Source: Leidyana gryllorum EB-2025a
Taxonomy: Eukaryota > Protista > Apicomplexa
NCBI GenBank assembly: GCA_048772705.1
Contig: JBLWGC010000035.1
Location: forward strand, 1-64,000
DNA length: 64,000 nt
Direction of reading: 5' to 3'
A program made the position numbers and the translations under genes. The notes under the pieces were generated by a model. The model was not told the DNA's origin. It made no database searches and saw only the letters and a program-made list of their open reading frames with translations. Every line of letters begins with the position of its first letter. Position 1 is the first letter of the stretch. Below, piece after piece: positions 11,603 through 33,599 of this stretch.

Positions 11603-14600
11603 CTAAAGGGGAATGATTGCCAGCAAACATGTTATTAAACGTACCAAATGATTTTCCTGTGCCCCAATCTGCCGTTGCAGCCAGCCCTGCGATCTGAACT
11701 CAGCCAAATTGGGCACATCCATTGCCCCGTCCAAGGAAGACAAGGACAGATCAGACACATCTAAAAAGTAGTTTGCGCCGTCATCGAAAGGGTTCTCGCC
11801 TATCGGCGGCAGCTTAAAGAGAGGACTTTCTGATCCGTGGCTCTGCAGGAGGTCTGTGAATGTTGACCAGTTCGGACTTGCGACGGAAGTAGAGCGATCA
11901 GGACGCCGATCAGCGAACAGATAATGAGCCTCGTGGCCAGTTCGAGCTCCATAGGCACGTAATATGGCAAGCACTCGTTCTTTTTTGCTTCGTTCAAGCG
12001 TCGCGTTTGCAGCGCAAGCACTCCAGGGTGTGTGTCCAACCTAAGGAATAGAGTTGAGTCAATGAATGGCAAGTGGGGGACAAAGATCTCAAAAGCGTCG
12101 AGGAAACTGAACCGACGGGTACGACAGCTTTTCCCGGGCACAACCGAGGGGACTGATTGGCTTCACCAGTGCACCACACGAAGCAAAAATGCGCGATCAA
12201 CCACACACACACACGCGGTGGGTCGATTCAGCGGATTTGTGCGTTGAGCGACAAGCCAGGGACAAGAGCACGTGGTAGGGTGCAGTCGCTGCTTCGGTGA
12301 GTGCACATTGGGCATATCGTCGACGGTTGCGCCCGGATTGCTCGGCATTCGATGGAAGGTTCTTACCTGATTTATTTCGTTCGGATTGTAGCCTTGTTGG
12401 CATAGAAGTCGCACGCATGCCTCGTGGGCATAGTATGCCGCGAGGTGTAGCGGCGAATTACGACACTGAGTGTCAAACAATGTATTTGGGTTGAAGTCGA
12501 GTTTAGCGTCTTCCAATATATCAACTCGTCCCGTTCTGGCCGCTTCCAGTACCATCTCAGAGGTGAGACGTTCTGGAACAGCAGTAGTCGCCGTATCTTG
12601 ATCTGCCAATCGTGCTTTTTTGACCTCCAACACAACTAGAGCTTCTTGGCGTCTTTTGTAGTAGTCTCGAGCGAGGGCCAATGCCACGATCAGGATGCAT
12701 ATGGCCAGACCAAACCACGTCCACATCATCAGACCCTGCCACCCTTTCTTTGACAAAGAAGAAAAAGAAAGTAAAAACTCACAAGTCTGCTGATCATGTC
12801 ACCGCAGGTGCTCTGCCACATCCCAAACATTGCGTCCCTCTGTACTGTACAGAAGTTCAGATCCTTCCAATAGTCGACGCTGGACTTGAAAACTGTGTGA
12901 ATGTACCGATGATGTAGTCGCTGGGATGGGGAACTGACCTCGGAAAGGATTGACTTGAGGAATCAGATCAACGAGGTGTTGCCTCAATTCGTCTCTGCCT
13001 TTGTTCGTGCTAAGATCTTTCATCAAATGGTCGTATTCCACTGTAAGTTTCTTCGCCCACTCCTCGTAGGTCACCGTCCTCATTTCCGCTCCTTGTTCTA
13101 TTGACAACTCCTTTCTCTCGACGAAATGACCATTGTCATCCCCATCCTCATCCCCGTCCCCGTCGACATCGACGTTATAATCAGAGTAGAGTGAAACCAG
13201 AATGAATAGATGAGCTGGTTGTCCCCAATTAGTGACCTCAACTTCCCCATCCACCTGTCTGCTCAGACTGGCGGACCGAATCATCGCAACAGACAAAGCG
13301 TTAGCCAGACGAGGCCAACGGGCGATTCGAACGCCATCAAAGAGCTCTTTAGCACATCCGGACACATATGTGTTCTCCAAACCGCTCATGGTGGCGTCCA
13401 CGGCCGTGTATAGTGAATATTCCGATGAGAGAGGACACAGGTGTATTTGTCCATCTGATGTGGCTGGTCGATCTCAGGACTCCCACGCGATATAAAGACC
13501 CGAGGGTACTTTATCTCGTCGAATAAGAGTTCAATTCGACTCTCAAGCGCCTGGAGACCATAAACTGTCCTCCCGTCAGCCGTAACAACATCGAGTTCTT
13601 GCAGACCAATGTTATCGAGCATCTCGTCCTCGGCTATTTTCTGAGTCGATATGATCAAAGGCTCAAAGGACGACAGCGAGGGTGGACGCTGCAGTGGGGG
13701 TGGACGGGATGCAGCGTTCATATCCCACTCCGGCATCCACACCAGAGTCTCCTCCAGATTGTGGAAATGGTACATACCACCAGTCCCGTATGGAGACAAA
13801 CACTGTTTGATGAAGGAAGCGGGCCACTGTATCGCGTTCTTGTAATCGCGCCAATTAGCATTATCCATAATGTCGTGACGAACAATGTAACACCAATTCG
13901 CCAATGGAAGCTAAAGGAGCGTAGCGGCCGCGCAGCACAATAACGCTGGAGAACACTGTTTTGCTGAAAAGAGAGAGGGGAAGACTCACCAAGCGCACTC
14001 ATGGCCCCCAGACCTCCTATCAGAGAGATTCGCTGCATGTTGCGCACCGGGGGAGGACGTGGCGTAGATAATCGACTGAATAGCCGTTTTGCAGCTATTA
14101 ACATCAGAAATACCTCAACAATCATCGCAACTGAAGCGATCGCCAAACCGATCCTGCCGACCTCGTGAATCACCCCTTCGAATTGTCGCGGCAAACGCGC
14201 GTTGTGGAGTCGTGATAATTGCGGGAGCGTGTCAGCGAGATCTTTATGCGCTGTGGACCACTTCTCTTCCTGCTGCCTCATCATTTCTCTGATATGTGGC
14301 AAATCGATACCCAAATCTGTATTCTGCAGCGAAGACTCTTCGGCCCACCACTCATACAATGGTTCAATGGCTTGCAAGATCTCTTCCTCGTACTTGTCAT
14401 AGTTTAGAATCGTTGGATTGAGACTCTGGATTTCACCATGGGGCATTTGATACTTTATGTTCCTTAGCAGTTGTTGCGTCACCAACACTGAACCAAATAG
14501 AGAATCAATAGCCCGAGCACCGCTGACCGGGAGTTCCACCTCGGGATGGAGCAACGAATGATAATGCGCCACATCTGCGAGAGTCCGCACTCTGTACAAT

Positions 14601-30840: not shown

Positions 30841-33599
30841 CTAGCTAAACTCTTGCATTGCCCGCCACACCAATGCTTCTCGCACATTCATCGGACCTTC
30901 CCCACGATTGCTGCTCCACGCACAGACCACAATAGAGAAAGCGGTGATCAGCACCAGTCCCAGGGTCACAAAAATAAACCCCAGTAGAGCCATATTGCCA
31001 ACTAAACCCACGCACGACACTGTCCATAACGCTTCTTGTAGCTGCTGTAACTGACTGCAGTTCCAACGCCAAACCGCAGTTTGCAAAATCCTCTCCCACG
31101 CTGTCAACAGACGGATTTTCACGGGGAAGTAGTAATTATGACCACACACGCGAACACAACGAGACACACGATCGCACAAACACGCAACACACAACACCCT
31201 GTCTCAGATCATCCATCATTCAACGGTTTATCTACATTCCATATTGTGCATCACGAATGAGGAGTCGCAGCTGACAGCAATACCGTGAGTCAGGTTTTAT
31301 TTAACGGACTTTGACGGGTGCACAATGAAGCCGACTTACTGGGCTCAAAGGCGACAAATTGCCCAAATTGTATCGTTAAAGATATCAAATCCTCCACTGA
31401 AGTAGTCAATTGCAGGGAACGGACGGCCTCTGGTGCCCGTTCCGTCCACGTTGCATAGTCAACATACGCTAGATTGAATCCATTCTCACACAATTCGAGT
31501 AGCACGAAGGGGTGACAGCAGACCCCAACTGGGCAGATGTTTTCGACGCCACCTATTTCATCTGGTGAACTGCTGGAGCGAGACCAAGGACGAAAGGCAG
31601 CGTTCCTGAGCGCACCCATATATATGCGTTTCAAAAAGCGTTGGCTCGAGTTCGGGTTCGTCAACCATTCGTAGGCATCACGCAAAAGGAGATCGTGAGT
31701 CAGATCGTCAATAGTGGCGGCGTTTGGTTCGTTGTACACCGTATCAGGTGTCACGAGGACGATCAGTTTTGAGGTGAGCCTCCGACAAACATCCTCCGGC
31801 TGTACGCACAGGTAGTAGGGGCAGTCTGGATCCAGATCGGCATTGAGTCTCATTTCCAGAGCCGCCAAACTTTCGGCACTGAGAACTTTTTTTCCATTCT
31901 CCCCAACGACATCGACGAGGATCGAAGGAGATATTTGGGGCGCGACAACGATCTCCAATTCCAGATCGCTGGAGACATACTCAGGTGTTGAGTATTCCAC
32001 ATTTTGTCCGAAGCGTGTGTAGACAGCCTCGTGCATTTCGGATTGCCAATTGACCCAATCCTCCGGGAGATAGACTGGTGTTCCGTTAACGAGTTGATGG
32101 ACAAAGTCATCTAATTCGCCGTCTGCTCCCCATTGGAGGCAATGTGTTTGGAGAGTTGATGCGGCAGGGTGTGGGCAGATGTCCGCCTCATTTCCCCAGA
32201 CAGCGCAGTACTGTCCCCGGGTCATGAGGTCATCGCTGAGAAAGATGCAAGCATCGGCCGCATGGTATGTCTTGAAGAAGACAAGCCCGGAGATAGCAAT
32301 CCAGACGCCTCCTACGAGCCATCCGATGAGAACATACCAGGGGCGGCCTCGGGGCGAGAAGAAGTTTCGCTGACGCCAATAAAAGAGTATTTCAATGAGT
32401 CCCAGAAACACAAAGAGGAGCAGTGCTGCCATGAGGATATTGGTGGTGGCGCGTGTAGGTTCAACGTAGAGGAACGCTGATTGCCATTGTTCGGGATTCG
32501 GGTTGTTTCTGAATGTGTTTGCGATCGAGTCGAATAAAGCCATTGTTCGGTCCATAGTGGTGACCATTCGATCGAGATAGTCGTGATGTCGTGCAAAGGC
32601 TTCCGTAGTATTCCCAGCAGGAGCAGAGCCGTTGTGTGCTCGGAGAGAGGAGACAAATTGCCCAAAGGTGATTTGGGTTTGCGGATACATTGCGAATAAG
32701 GGTTCCACCTGGGTCAGGGGGGAGTTCAAAGGTACAGTGGGGGTCGGTAGTGCTTGGGGCCAGTCGTGAGTTTCGTTAATCACCGTGTCATAGGCTTGGA
32801 GGTGTAGGCCGAGACTGAATGGTTTCTCATTCCCATGACGATCTGACCATCCGATCAGGTTGGGCGCGGCGATATTCGTCTCGGTGGCGATTATTGTGGC
32901 ATGTATGAGCATCGCCCATTGTTTCCAATGGTCGTTGATGTTGGCTCCGAAACCATAGTCGTGCCATCGATCTATTTCGTCATGAAGTTGATCTACAAAG
33001 TTACGAAAGCTTTGTAATCCTCGTTGGGCGCCGTGACCGTACTTGAGATCATAGGCTGCTTGAACGCTCATACATCGACTTGCTTTGAATGCTTTAGAAG
33101 CGCGCTGGTGTGCGACCGACGCCCAGATCAATAAGATGAAACAGCTTATCACACCAACGCTCAAGAGCAATCCGTTGACAAAATAACGGGTAGGCTCTCT
33201 GGTAGCAGACGGGGTAACAGCTTTACTCTCATTGCCTCGGACCGCACATGGCCAGATACAAACTAAACCGCAGATTACCAATATCGAACCAAGCACAATA
33301 AGGCTACTCGCCAAAATACTTGGGGTCGCAGATAAGGAGCTCGAACCGCCAGGGGTAAAGTAATCGTTATATATGTCGCGTGTGCGCAGACTCTGTAACG
33401 AGGCCAGAGCTTGTTCTGCTTGCCAGTCGAGTGCAATACTATCATAGGATATACGCCCAGAATCGCAAAACCATTCCACTGCCTGAGCCAAATCCCACCT
33501 ATCCTCCAACCATTCTTCCCACCCCATCTTACAAAAAAAGCTATCCCTCACATGCCATAGTGCCCAACACGGCAGCACTACCGCAACTAAACAGAACAA
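30841..33599 (-). CDS. Prominin/Tweety-like 5-TM protein P6; start uncertain (first ATG 33527, frame open to 33599)
   Basis: CMSVQAAYDLKY, LIGWSDRHG, ADACIF, CPVGVCCHPF. A phase-1 intron leads to WNCSQLQQLQEALWTVSC and TM5. Confidence 0.72.

Follow-up and report, generated by a model that had tools for sequence, protein, structure and literature searches.

Outside animals, proteins of the prominin/Tweety superfamily are almost unstudied. TTYH proteins, the Tweety family of animals, have a hydrophobic cavity at the outer leaflet and a flap held by disulfides, and they show no channel activity (PMC8361169). TTYH2 speeds lipid transfer 14-fold (PMC12328215), and both PROM1 and TTYH1 bend membranes and release vesicles (PMC11405016). 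Bell et al. (2024) compiled a broad eukaryotic prominin set that includes putative prominins in stramenopiles, alveolates and Rhizaria (SAR), and recognized prominins by ectoloops of >300 amino acids (aa) and intracellular loops of <25 aa (PMC11405016). In Apicomplexa, PF3D7_0104100 (E140) and TGME49_218910 have been assigned to the prominins by HHpred (PMC8115857). The Plasmodium falciparum protein (PfE140) is located at the parasite plasma membrane (PMC11578967), and E140 of Plasmodium is a surface antigen that is polymorphic and within reach of antibodies (PMC8115857, PMC7224506). Here we describe an array of six genes, P6 to P1, on the minus strand of the first 64 kb (hereafter the window) of contig C35 (JBLWGC010000035.1) of the gregarine Leidyana gryllorum EB-2025a (assembly GCA_048772705.1; 15.5 Mb, 237 contigs). 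The encoded proteins very probably belong to the prominin/Tweety superfamily.

Gene models were built by reading GT-AG junctions, and the joined translations were used for frame and hydropathy checks; database searches and folding of window proteins were carried out exon by exon. Five genes (P2 to P6) are resolved by canonical GT-AG splicing, with introns of 43 to 447 nt, into stop-free frames encoding five transmembrane segments (TMs) each, and hydropathy places the five hydrophobic segments in a 2+2+1 order. The splice junctions of these models are predictions resting on sequence and homology. A sequence-only reading of this DNA had proposed six spliced paralogues on one strand; the array, the shared 2+2+1 layout and the paralogy all stand, but only five genes are intact, and P1 is broken by stops at 16026 and 13913 and by frame changes. 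All-versus-all BLASTP of the exon open reading frames (ORFs) linked the genes at E values from 1e-64 (P2/P3) to 3e-5 (P4/P6), and the paralogues are ~20 to 45% identical to one another.

All six genes carry a C-x14-C motif ahead of TM5 and a phase-1 intron 15 codons upstream of it, so that the 22-kb array has six places at which an acceptor AG precedes the first Cys by 41 nt. The remaining 42 kb of the minus strand and the plus strand of the whole window had no such signature, and other AG-to-Cys offsets gave 0 to 3 occurrences. The invariant motif and the shared intron had both been claimed in the sequence-only reading, and each was recovered in 6/6 genes. Other motifs that it attributed to the array proved narrower. 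The N-terminal C-x-[FMI]-x-D motif is exact in P2 to P5 but not in the others, and the C-x5-P-x3-LY loop motif is likewise confined to P2 to P5; CP-x4-C-x-PF is exact in P2, P3, P5, and P6, but it is a variant in P4 and was not found in P1. The Cys after TM4 is present, although its context is EGC in P5 and NWC in P1, outside the DVC, DAC, and HVC forms that had been listed.

Table 1. Array genes, shared motif, and dispersed family copies (window positions unless a contig is given)
Feature	Position	Strand	Description
P6	33527-30841	-	intact, 815 aa, 1 phase-1 intron; exons 33527-31340, 31100-30841
P5	30634-26785	-	intact, 1188 aa, 1 intron; exons 30634-27280, 26996-26785
P4	26761-22989	-	intact, ~980 aa, 3 introns; exons 26761-25895, 25551-23811, 23363-23254, 23210-22989
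P3	22950-20002	-	intact, 903 aa, 4 introns; exons 22950-22304, 22255-21621, 21571-20630, 20538-20429, 20379-20002
P2	19754-16229	-	intact, 1073 aa, 5 introns; exons 19754-19108, 18978-18335, 18289-17330, 17286-17177, 17133-16453, 16408-16229
P1 5' part	16185-12893	-	broken reading frame
P1 3' part	12892-11603	-	intact; exons 12892-12783 (C-x14-C), 12747-12367 (TM5 + ankyrin), 12040-11603 (last)
Six C-x14-C motifs	first Cys 31059, 26955, 23322, 20497, 17245, 12851	-	41 nt past phase-1 intron acceptor
21-nt tandem repeat (minisatellite)	28611-28900	-	Ala-rich heptad run, first ectoloop of P5
C109 copy	G000:C109:71770-74660 (near 72-74.6 kb)		dispersed, full-size, without ankyrin tail
C7 copy	G000:C7:52400-55900 (near 52.5-55.9 kb)		dispersed, full-size, without ankyrin tail
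C230 copy	G000:C230:209550-212120 (near 209.6-212.1 kb)	-	short Tweety-sized ectoloops, longer ankyrin tail

Superfamily membership was approached through homologues. A profile made from the window exons alone matched 11 proteins among 1.84 billion, including two from Gregarina sp. Poly1 (E values of 5e-19 and 3e-10), one from Blabericola migrator (1e-12), G. niphandrodes EZG68072 (2e-8), Vitrella CEL91846 (1e-4), a protein of the dinoflagellate Durusdinium (5e-4), and four Logan proteins; the remaining match, P0005, hit a bacterial repeat and was discarded as spurious. Alignment of the window profile by hhalign supported the matches to the Gregarina homologue P0001 (98%, E value of 4e-14, 442 columns) and to the Vitrella homologue (95%, E value of 5e-8). 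The Vitrella protein matches Pfam Prominin with an E value of 6.8e-8, at 31.5 bits against a gathering threshold of 34.3 bits, the best score among the homologues. Clusters of Tweety and Prominin proteins were also reached from the language-model features of both P6 and the dinoflagellate protein. Neither P6 nor the window profile returned a match in word-based homologue searches, and a wider profile returned only its own members.

An AlphaFold2 (AF2) model of P0001 residues 1 to 885, built from a 20-row alignment, reached a mean predicted local distance difference test (pLDDT) score of 77.3 and a predicted template modeling (pTM) score of 0.71. Compared with 48,161 solved chains, the model matched TTYH3 best (Z 15.8, 338/392 residues aligned, root mean square deviation [rmsd] 6.8), followed by TTYH1 (Z 14.8, 380/399 aligned, rmsd 7.8), with the third match at Z 10.3. 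Because no solved prominin structure turned up in PDB searches, the fold was compared with TTYH only. As modeled, the TTYH-type fold holds for nearly the whole chain of this full-length homologue and, through it, would extend to the array proteins. In the Atlas, the model matched three eukaryotic clusters (TM-scores of 0.39 to 0.51), and its best neighbor was an 837-aa cluster rich in Apicomplexa (0.48/0.51). The family profile aligned collinearly with TTYH3 over TM1-2, TM3, and C-x14-C/TM5, albeit weakly (E value of 0.77), and C-x14-C fell on the Cys pair of the same spacing before TM5 of TTYH3. What all copies conserve is the Cys following TM4, the Cys after that one, and the C-x14-C pair. 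The top two matches of the homologue model, the Vitrella Prominin hit, and the shared Cys spacing support the prominin/Tweety assignment first made from the letters alone.

The array proteins combine features of both families. They share with TTYH1-3 (PF04906; PDB 7p5j, 9qnr) the 2+2+1 TMs, a helical ectodomain in the homologue model, the Cys after TM4, C-x14-C before TM5, and a first cytoplasmic loop that begins with a Cys-rich stretch. They differ from them in being twice as long (815 to 1,188 versus 450 to 534 aa, the short chain with a compact ectodomain being typical of Tweety) and in having a cleavable-looking signal peptide, a three-Cys N-terminal ectodomain, larger ectoloops, and an additional Cys-rich module; some copies also bear an ankyrin tail. 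With prominins (PROM1/CD133, PF05478) they share size, signal peptide, 2+2+1 TMs, two large ectoloops, and a Cys cluster after TM1 (CCCC directly after it in P2 and P3); close to where TM5 begins, 9 to 15 residues past the second Cys of C-x14-C, P1 to P5 and most homologues, but not P6, have a Trp that may correspond to PROM1 Trp795, a residue absent from Tweety. Judged from hydropathy, the first ectoloop of P2 to P6 spans ~200 to 290 aa, below the 300 aa of Bell et al., and the second spans ~340 to 460 aa. Intracellular loops of 15 to 21 aa put P2 and P3 under the 25-aa limit, whereas those of P4 (25 and 29 aa), P6 (30 aa), and P5 (~330 aa) do not, the first cytoplasmic loop measuring 25 to 330 aa in P4 to P6. 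The Cys-rich insert and the ankyrin tail also set the array apart from prominins. Because they score below the Pfam Prominin and Pfam Tweety cutoffs and have a first ectoloop of <300 aa, we file the array proteins as divergent superfamily members, prominin-like in size and layout, and neither prominins nor Tweety proper. E140 (PF3D7_0104100, PBANKA_0209000; TGME49_218910), compared by description, is likewise a protein of ~800 aa with five predicted TMs and conserved extracellular Cys, but published descriptions give each Plasmodium species a single gene and mention no ankyrin repeats; neither E140 nor TGME49_218910 was among the 11 window-profile matches.

Several details of the gene models deserve mention. 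P2, P3, and P4 start with a signal-like N-terminus, and TM3 is weak in P2 and P3 (Kyte-Doolittle ~1.15). The true start of P6 is unsure because a hydrophobic, signal-like in-frame 5' extension to 33599, which lacks a Met and carries the first conserved Cys, overlaps (33541 to 33599), in a different frame, the final codons of the ZIP-like transporter gene that lies upstream. P5 may have a signal-peptide mini-exon near 30794 to 30747; the cytoplasmic insertion of ~330 aa that separates its TM1 from its TM2 lies at 29341 to 30260 on the minus strand, and P1 has a similarly long TM1-TM2 region. The phase-1 intron of P4 contains a long GT dinucleotide run (23685 to 23785). The stop-to-ATG gaps of P5/P4, P4/P3, and P2/P1 measure only 23, 38, and 43 nt (26762 to 26784, 22951 to 22988, and 16186 to 16228), so promoters and untranslated regions must overlap adjacent coding sequence.

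Three dispersed copies bring the family in this genome to at least nine. The C109 copy is convergent to a Myb gene, as is the locus of the Logan homologue P0003, and the C230 copy, the only one with short loops, is the best candidate for a minimal family member. Pfam Tweety and Prominin searches of the whole genome were blank, a result of little weight since the family genes are present there. The phase-1 intron 15 codons before C-x14-C also occurs in the G. niphandrodes gene, at two Logan loci, and in the C7 and C109 copies, and it therefore predates the array. No tandem neighbor of the family was seen at the G. niphandrodes locus or on the three Logan contigs examined. Trees were built from single-exon blocks, with P1, C7, and, per block, some fragments excluded, and have long branches. 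They joined P2 with P3 (100/99 and 99/97) and P4 with P5+P6 (100/97). The array grouped in the N-terminal block (82/88), adjacent to P0001 with weak support, and the ectoloop-2 block neither showed nor rejected a single array clade (p-AU 0.17), which leaves monophyly unsettled. The array is likely, though not proven, to be a local expansion from an ankyrin-tailed ancestor.

Ankyrin repeats after TM5, missing from the architecture given in the sequence-only reading, can be aligned among P1, P2, the C230 copy, and Gregarina P0001, and a phase-0 intron follows the same repeat in P1, P2, and C230. Used as a query, the C230 tail matched only P1 and P2 within the genome. Judging from these alignments, the ankyrin fusion is common to at least one other gregarine. 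The tail is absent from P3 to P6; P2 runs from an acidic linker into the repeats, and P3, its closest paralogue, keeps the acidic linker and then ends. On the simplest reading, the tail was lost in P3 to P6, an order of events that is inferred. Within the second ectoloop of P6, AF2 predicted from a shallow alignment a compact Cys-rich alpha/beta module (~31410 to 31880, minus strand; about residues 575 to 730 of exon 1; pLDDT 80 to 94). The gregarine homologues carry its CP-x4-C motif, Vitrella, Durusdinium, and P0010 lack it, and the module is apparently restricted to gregarines.

The sequence-only reading had called the family lineage-specific and expanded, and recognized no described family of its kind in the lineage. 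The tandem expansion is indeed probably local, but homologues extend across gregarines, Vitrella, and a dinoflagellate, and the apicomplexan prominin E140 has been published (PMC8115857). The gregarine proteins EZG68072 ("putative transmembrane protein"), Poly1 P008851 and P005095, and Blabericola P001522 are uncharacterized members of the same family with the CP-x4-C module; G. niphandrodes shares the phase-1 intron and Poly1 P008851 the TM5-ankyrin fusion, and they differ from the array in the lack of tandem family neighbors at the loci mentioned above. Superfamily, phase-1 intron, and ankyrin tail are thus not unique to this locus. We found no description of the local expansion to at least nine copies, the ankyrin tail, or the Cys-rich ectoloop module, and a literature search returned no paper joining "gregarin" and "prominin."

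We postulate that the locus is a tandem birth-and-death expansion of a gregarine branch of the superfamily and that its proteins handle lipids or shape membranes at the cell surface, a reading that we regard as reasonably probable. Lipid handling or membrane shaping is favored because the best-conserved residues are the Cys of the TTYH flap region. Each intact gene would produce a five-TM protein with its N-terminus outside and its C-terminus inside, in which long helices after TM2, before TM3, and before TM5 would project from the membrane as in TTYH. The post-TM4 Cys, the next conserved Cys, and the C-x14-C pair may hold a TTYH-type flap over a hydrophobic groove opening from the outer leaflet. 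Like TTYH2 and PROM1, such proteins could bind or transfer lipids at the parasite surface and favor curved membrane; the Cys-rich insert in ectoloop 2 might add a surface for binding partners, and the ankyrin tail might tie some copies to cytoplasmic partners. We infer the disulfide pairing, location, and lipid function, the last by analogy, and the sculpting, lipid transfer, or host contact suggested from the sequence alone keeps the same conjectural standing.

Several results weigh against this proposal. The function is borrowed from animal proteins that are ~10% identical. Searched exon by exon, the window proteins stayed below Pfam cutoffs, with Tweety at best at 12.2 bits (E value of 0.07; gathering threshold, 31.8) and Prominin at 10 to 11 bits (E value of 0.13; gathering threshold, 34.3), and PDB sequence searches with window exons or family profiles gave nothing significant. 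The sole window protein folded, P6 exon 1, which lacks TM5, had a pLDDT of 61 and no TTYH match; its matches to tektins, coiled coils, and pore-forming toxins (Z <9) were rejected as generic helical hairpins. Foldseek of the P0001 model gave no E value of <0.001, with TTYH at 0.09 to 0.8, and for a helical bundle Z values of 13 to 16 are only modestly above the level that calls for caution, with high rmsd.

The main rival keeps the fold but holds that the copies are chiefly diversified surface receptors or adhesins, serving attachment to the host gut or gamont pairing, with the Cys-rich module binding partners, the ankyrin tail relaying to the cytoskeleton, and the lipid role lost or secondary. 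The strong divergence of the paralogues, the presence of the CP-x4-C module in gregarine homologues and not in Vitrella, Durusdinium, or P0010, and the precedent of E140 as a surface antigen all speak for it. However, the residues kept in all copies belong to the TTYH-like core rather than to a known adhesion module, and Pfam identified no adhesion domain in the window exons and homologues. We consider this alternative possible, though distinctly less probable than lipid handling or membrane shaping.

P1 is the broken member of the array. It begins at ATG 16185 with a signal-like start and three Cys, followed by an in-frame TGA at 16026. TM1 lies in another frame (15456 to 16013), TM2 near 14840 to 14650, and TM3 within 14599 to 13990. 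A 44-nt intron (13989 to 13946) sits where P2, P3, and the C230 copy have their TM4 intron, and directly after it a TAG at 13913 falls inside TM4; a further frame change occurs near 13400. The last three exons are open: one carries C-x14-C, the next TM5 with ankyrin, and the third, reaching 11603, more ankyrin sequence. Inspection by eye for short introns bypassing the stops turned up none that retains the conserved residues; stop-codon recoding was ruled out, as P2 to P6 terminate in TAG, TGA, and TAA and have none internally. At least four breaks in ~3.3 kb, versus none in ~15 kb of P2 to P6 coding sequence, argue for decay rather than sequencing error. The open 3' exons and their well-conserved ankyrin sequence would also suit a P1 that is intact in the organism and broken by assembly errors, or a 3' part that is a separate one-TM ankyrin gene, but given the density of breaks, two of which are in-frame stop codons and not homopolymer slips, we find either of these unlikely.

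A role as ion or metal transporters or channel partners seems more improbable still. The original description of Tweety proteins was as chloride channels (PMC8273234), iron import has been suggested as the role of PfE140 (PMC11578967), and a ZIP-like transporter gene adjoins P6; yet TTYH structures lack a pore, TTYH proteins gave no currents in LRRC8-null cells (PMC8361169), and none of the three dispersed copies or of the homologous loci examined showed a ZIP neighbor. Convergence alone on a prominin/Tweety-like layout, to which the want of significant direct Pfam or PDB sequence matches of the window exons might point, is largely refuted by the stepwise homology to the Vitrella protein, the match of the homologue model to TTYH across the whole chain, and the identical C-x14-C spacing, and it has very little probability.

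Epicytic folds cover the gregarine surface. We speculate, with considerable doubt, that a gregarine prominin-type toolkit, some of it ankyrin-tailed, couples curved plasma-membrane ridges to the cortical cytoskeleton, with paralogues specialized by loop size, Cys module, and tail. If so, a unicellular parasite would shape its cell by means of a prominin-based system, with a domain fusion for which we found no description. The family is a candidate for explaining how the gregarine surface is shaped; it is not a new kind of system. Plasmodium E140 is a vaccine candidate, and the at least nine diverged copies here, including loop-length variants and an ankyrin-tailed form, offer a series for dissecting lipid transfer, membrane bending, and anchoring.

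Elsewhere on the minus strand of the window are a sterol-sensing-domain (Patched/NPC1-like) gene (2851 to 3975) and a phospholipid-flippase P-type ATPase (42318 to 44084); nothing points to a functional connection of either with the array. Long ORFs of 494 to 1,012 aa without a Pfam match lie at 46629 to 50111 and 56261 to 59296 on the same strand.

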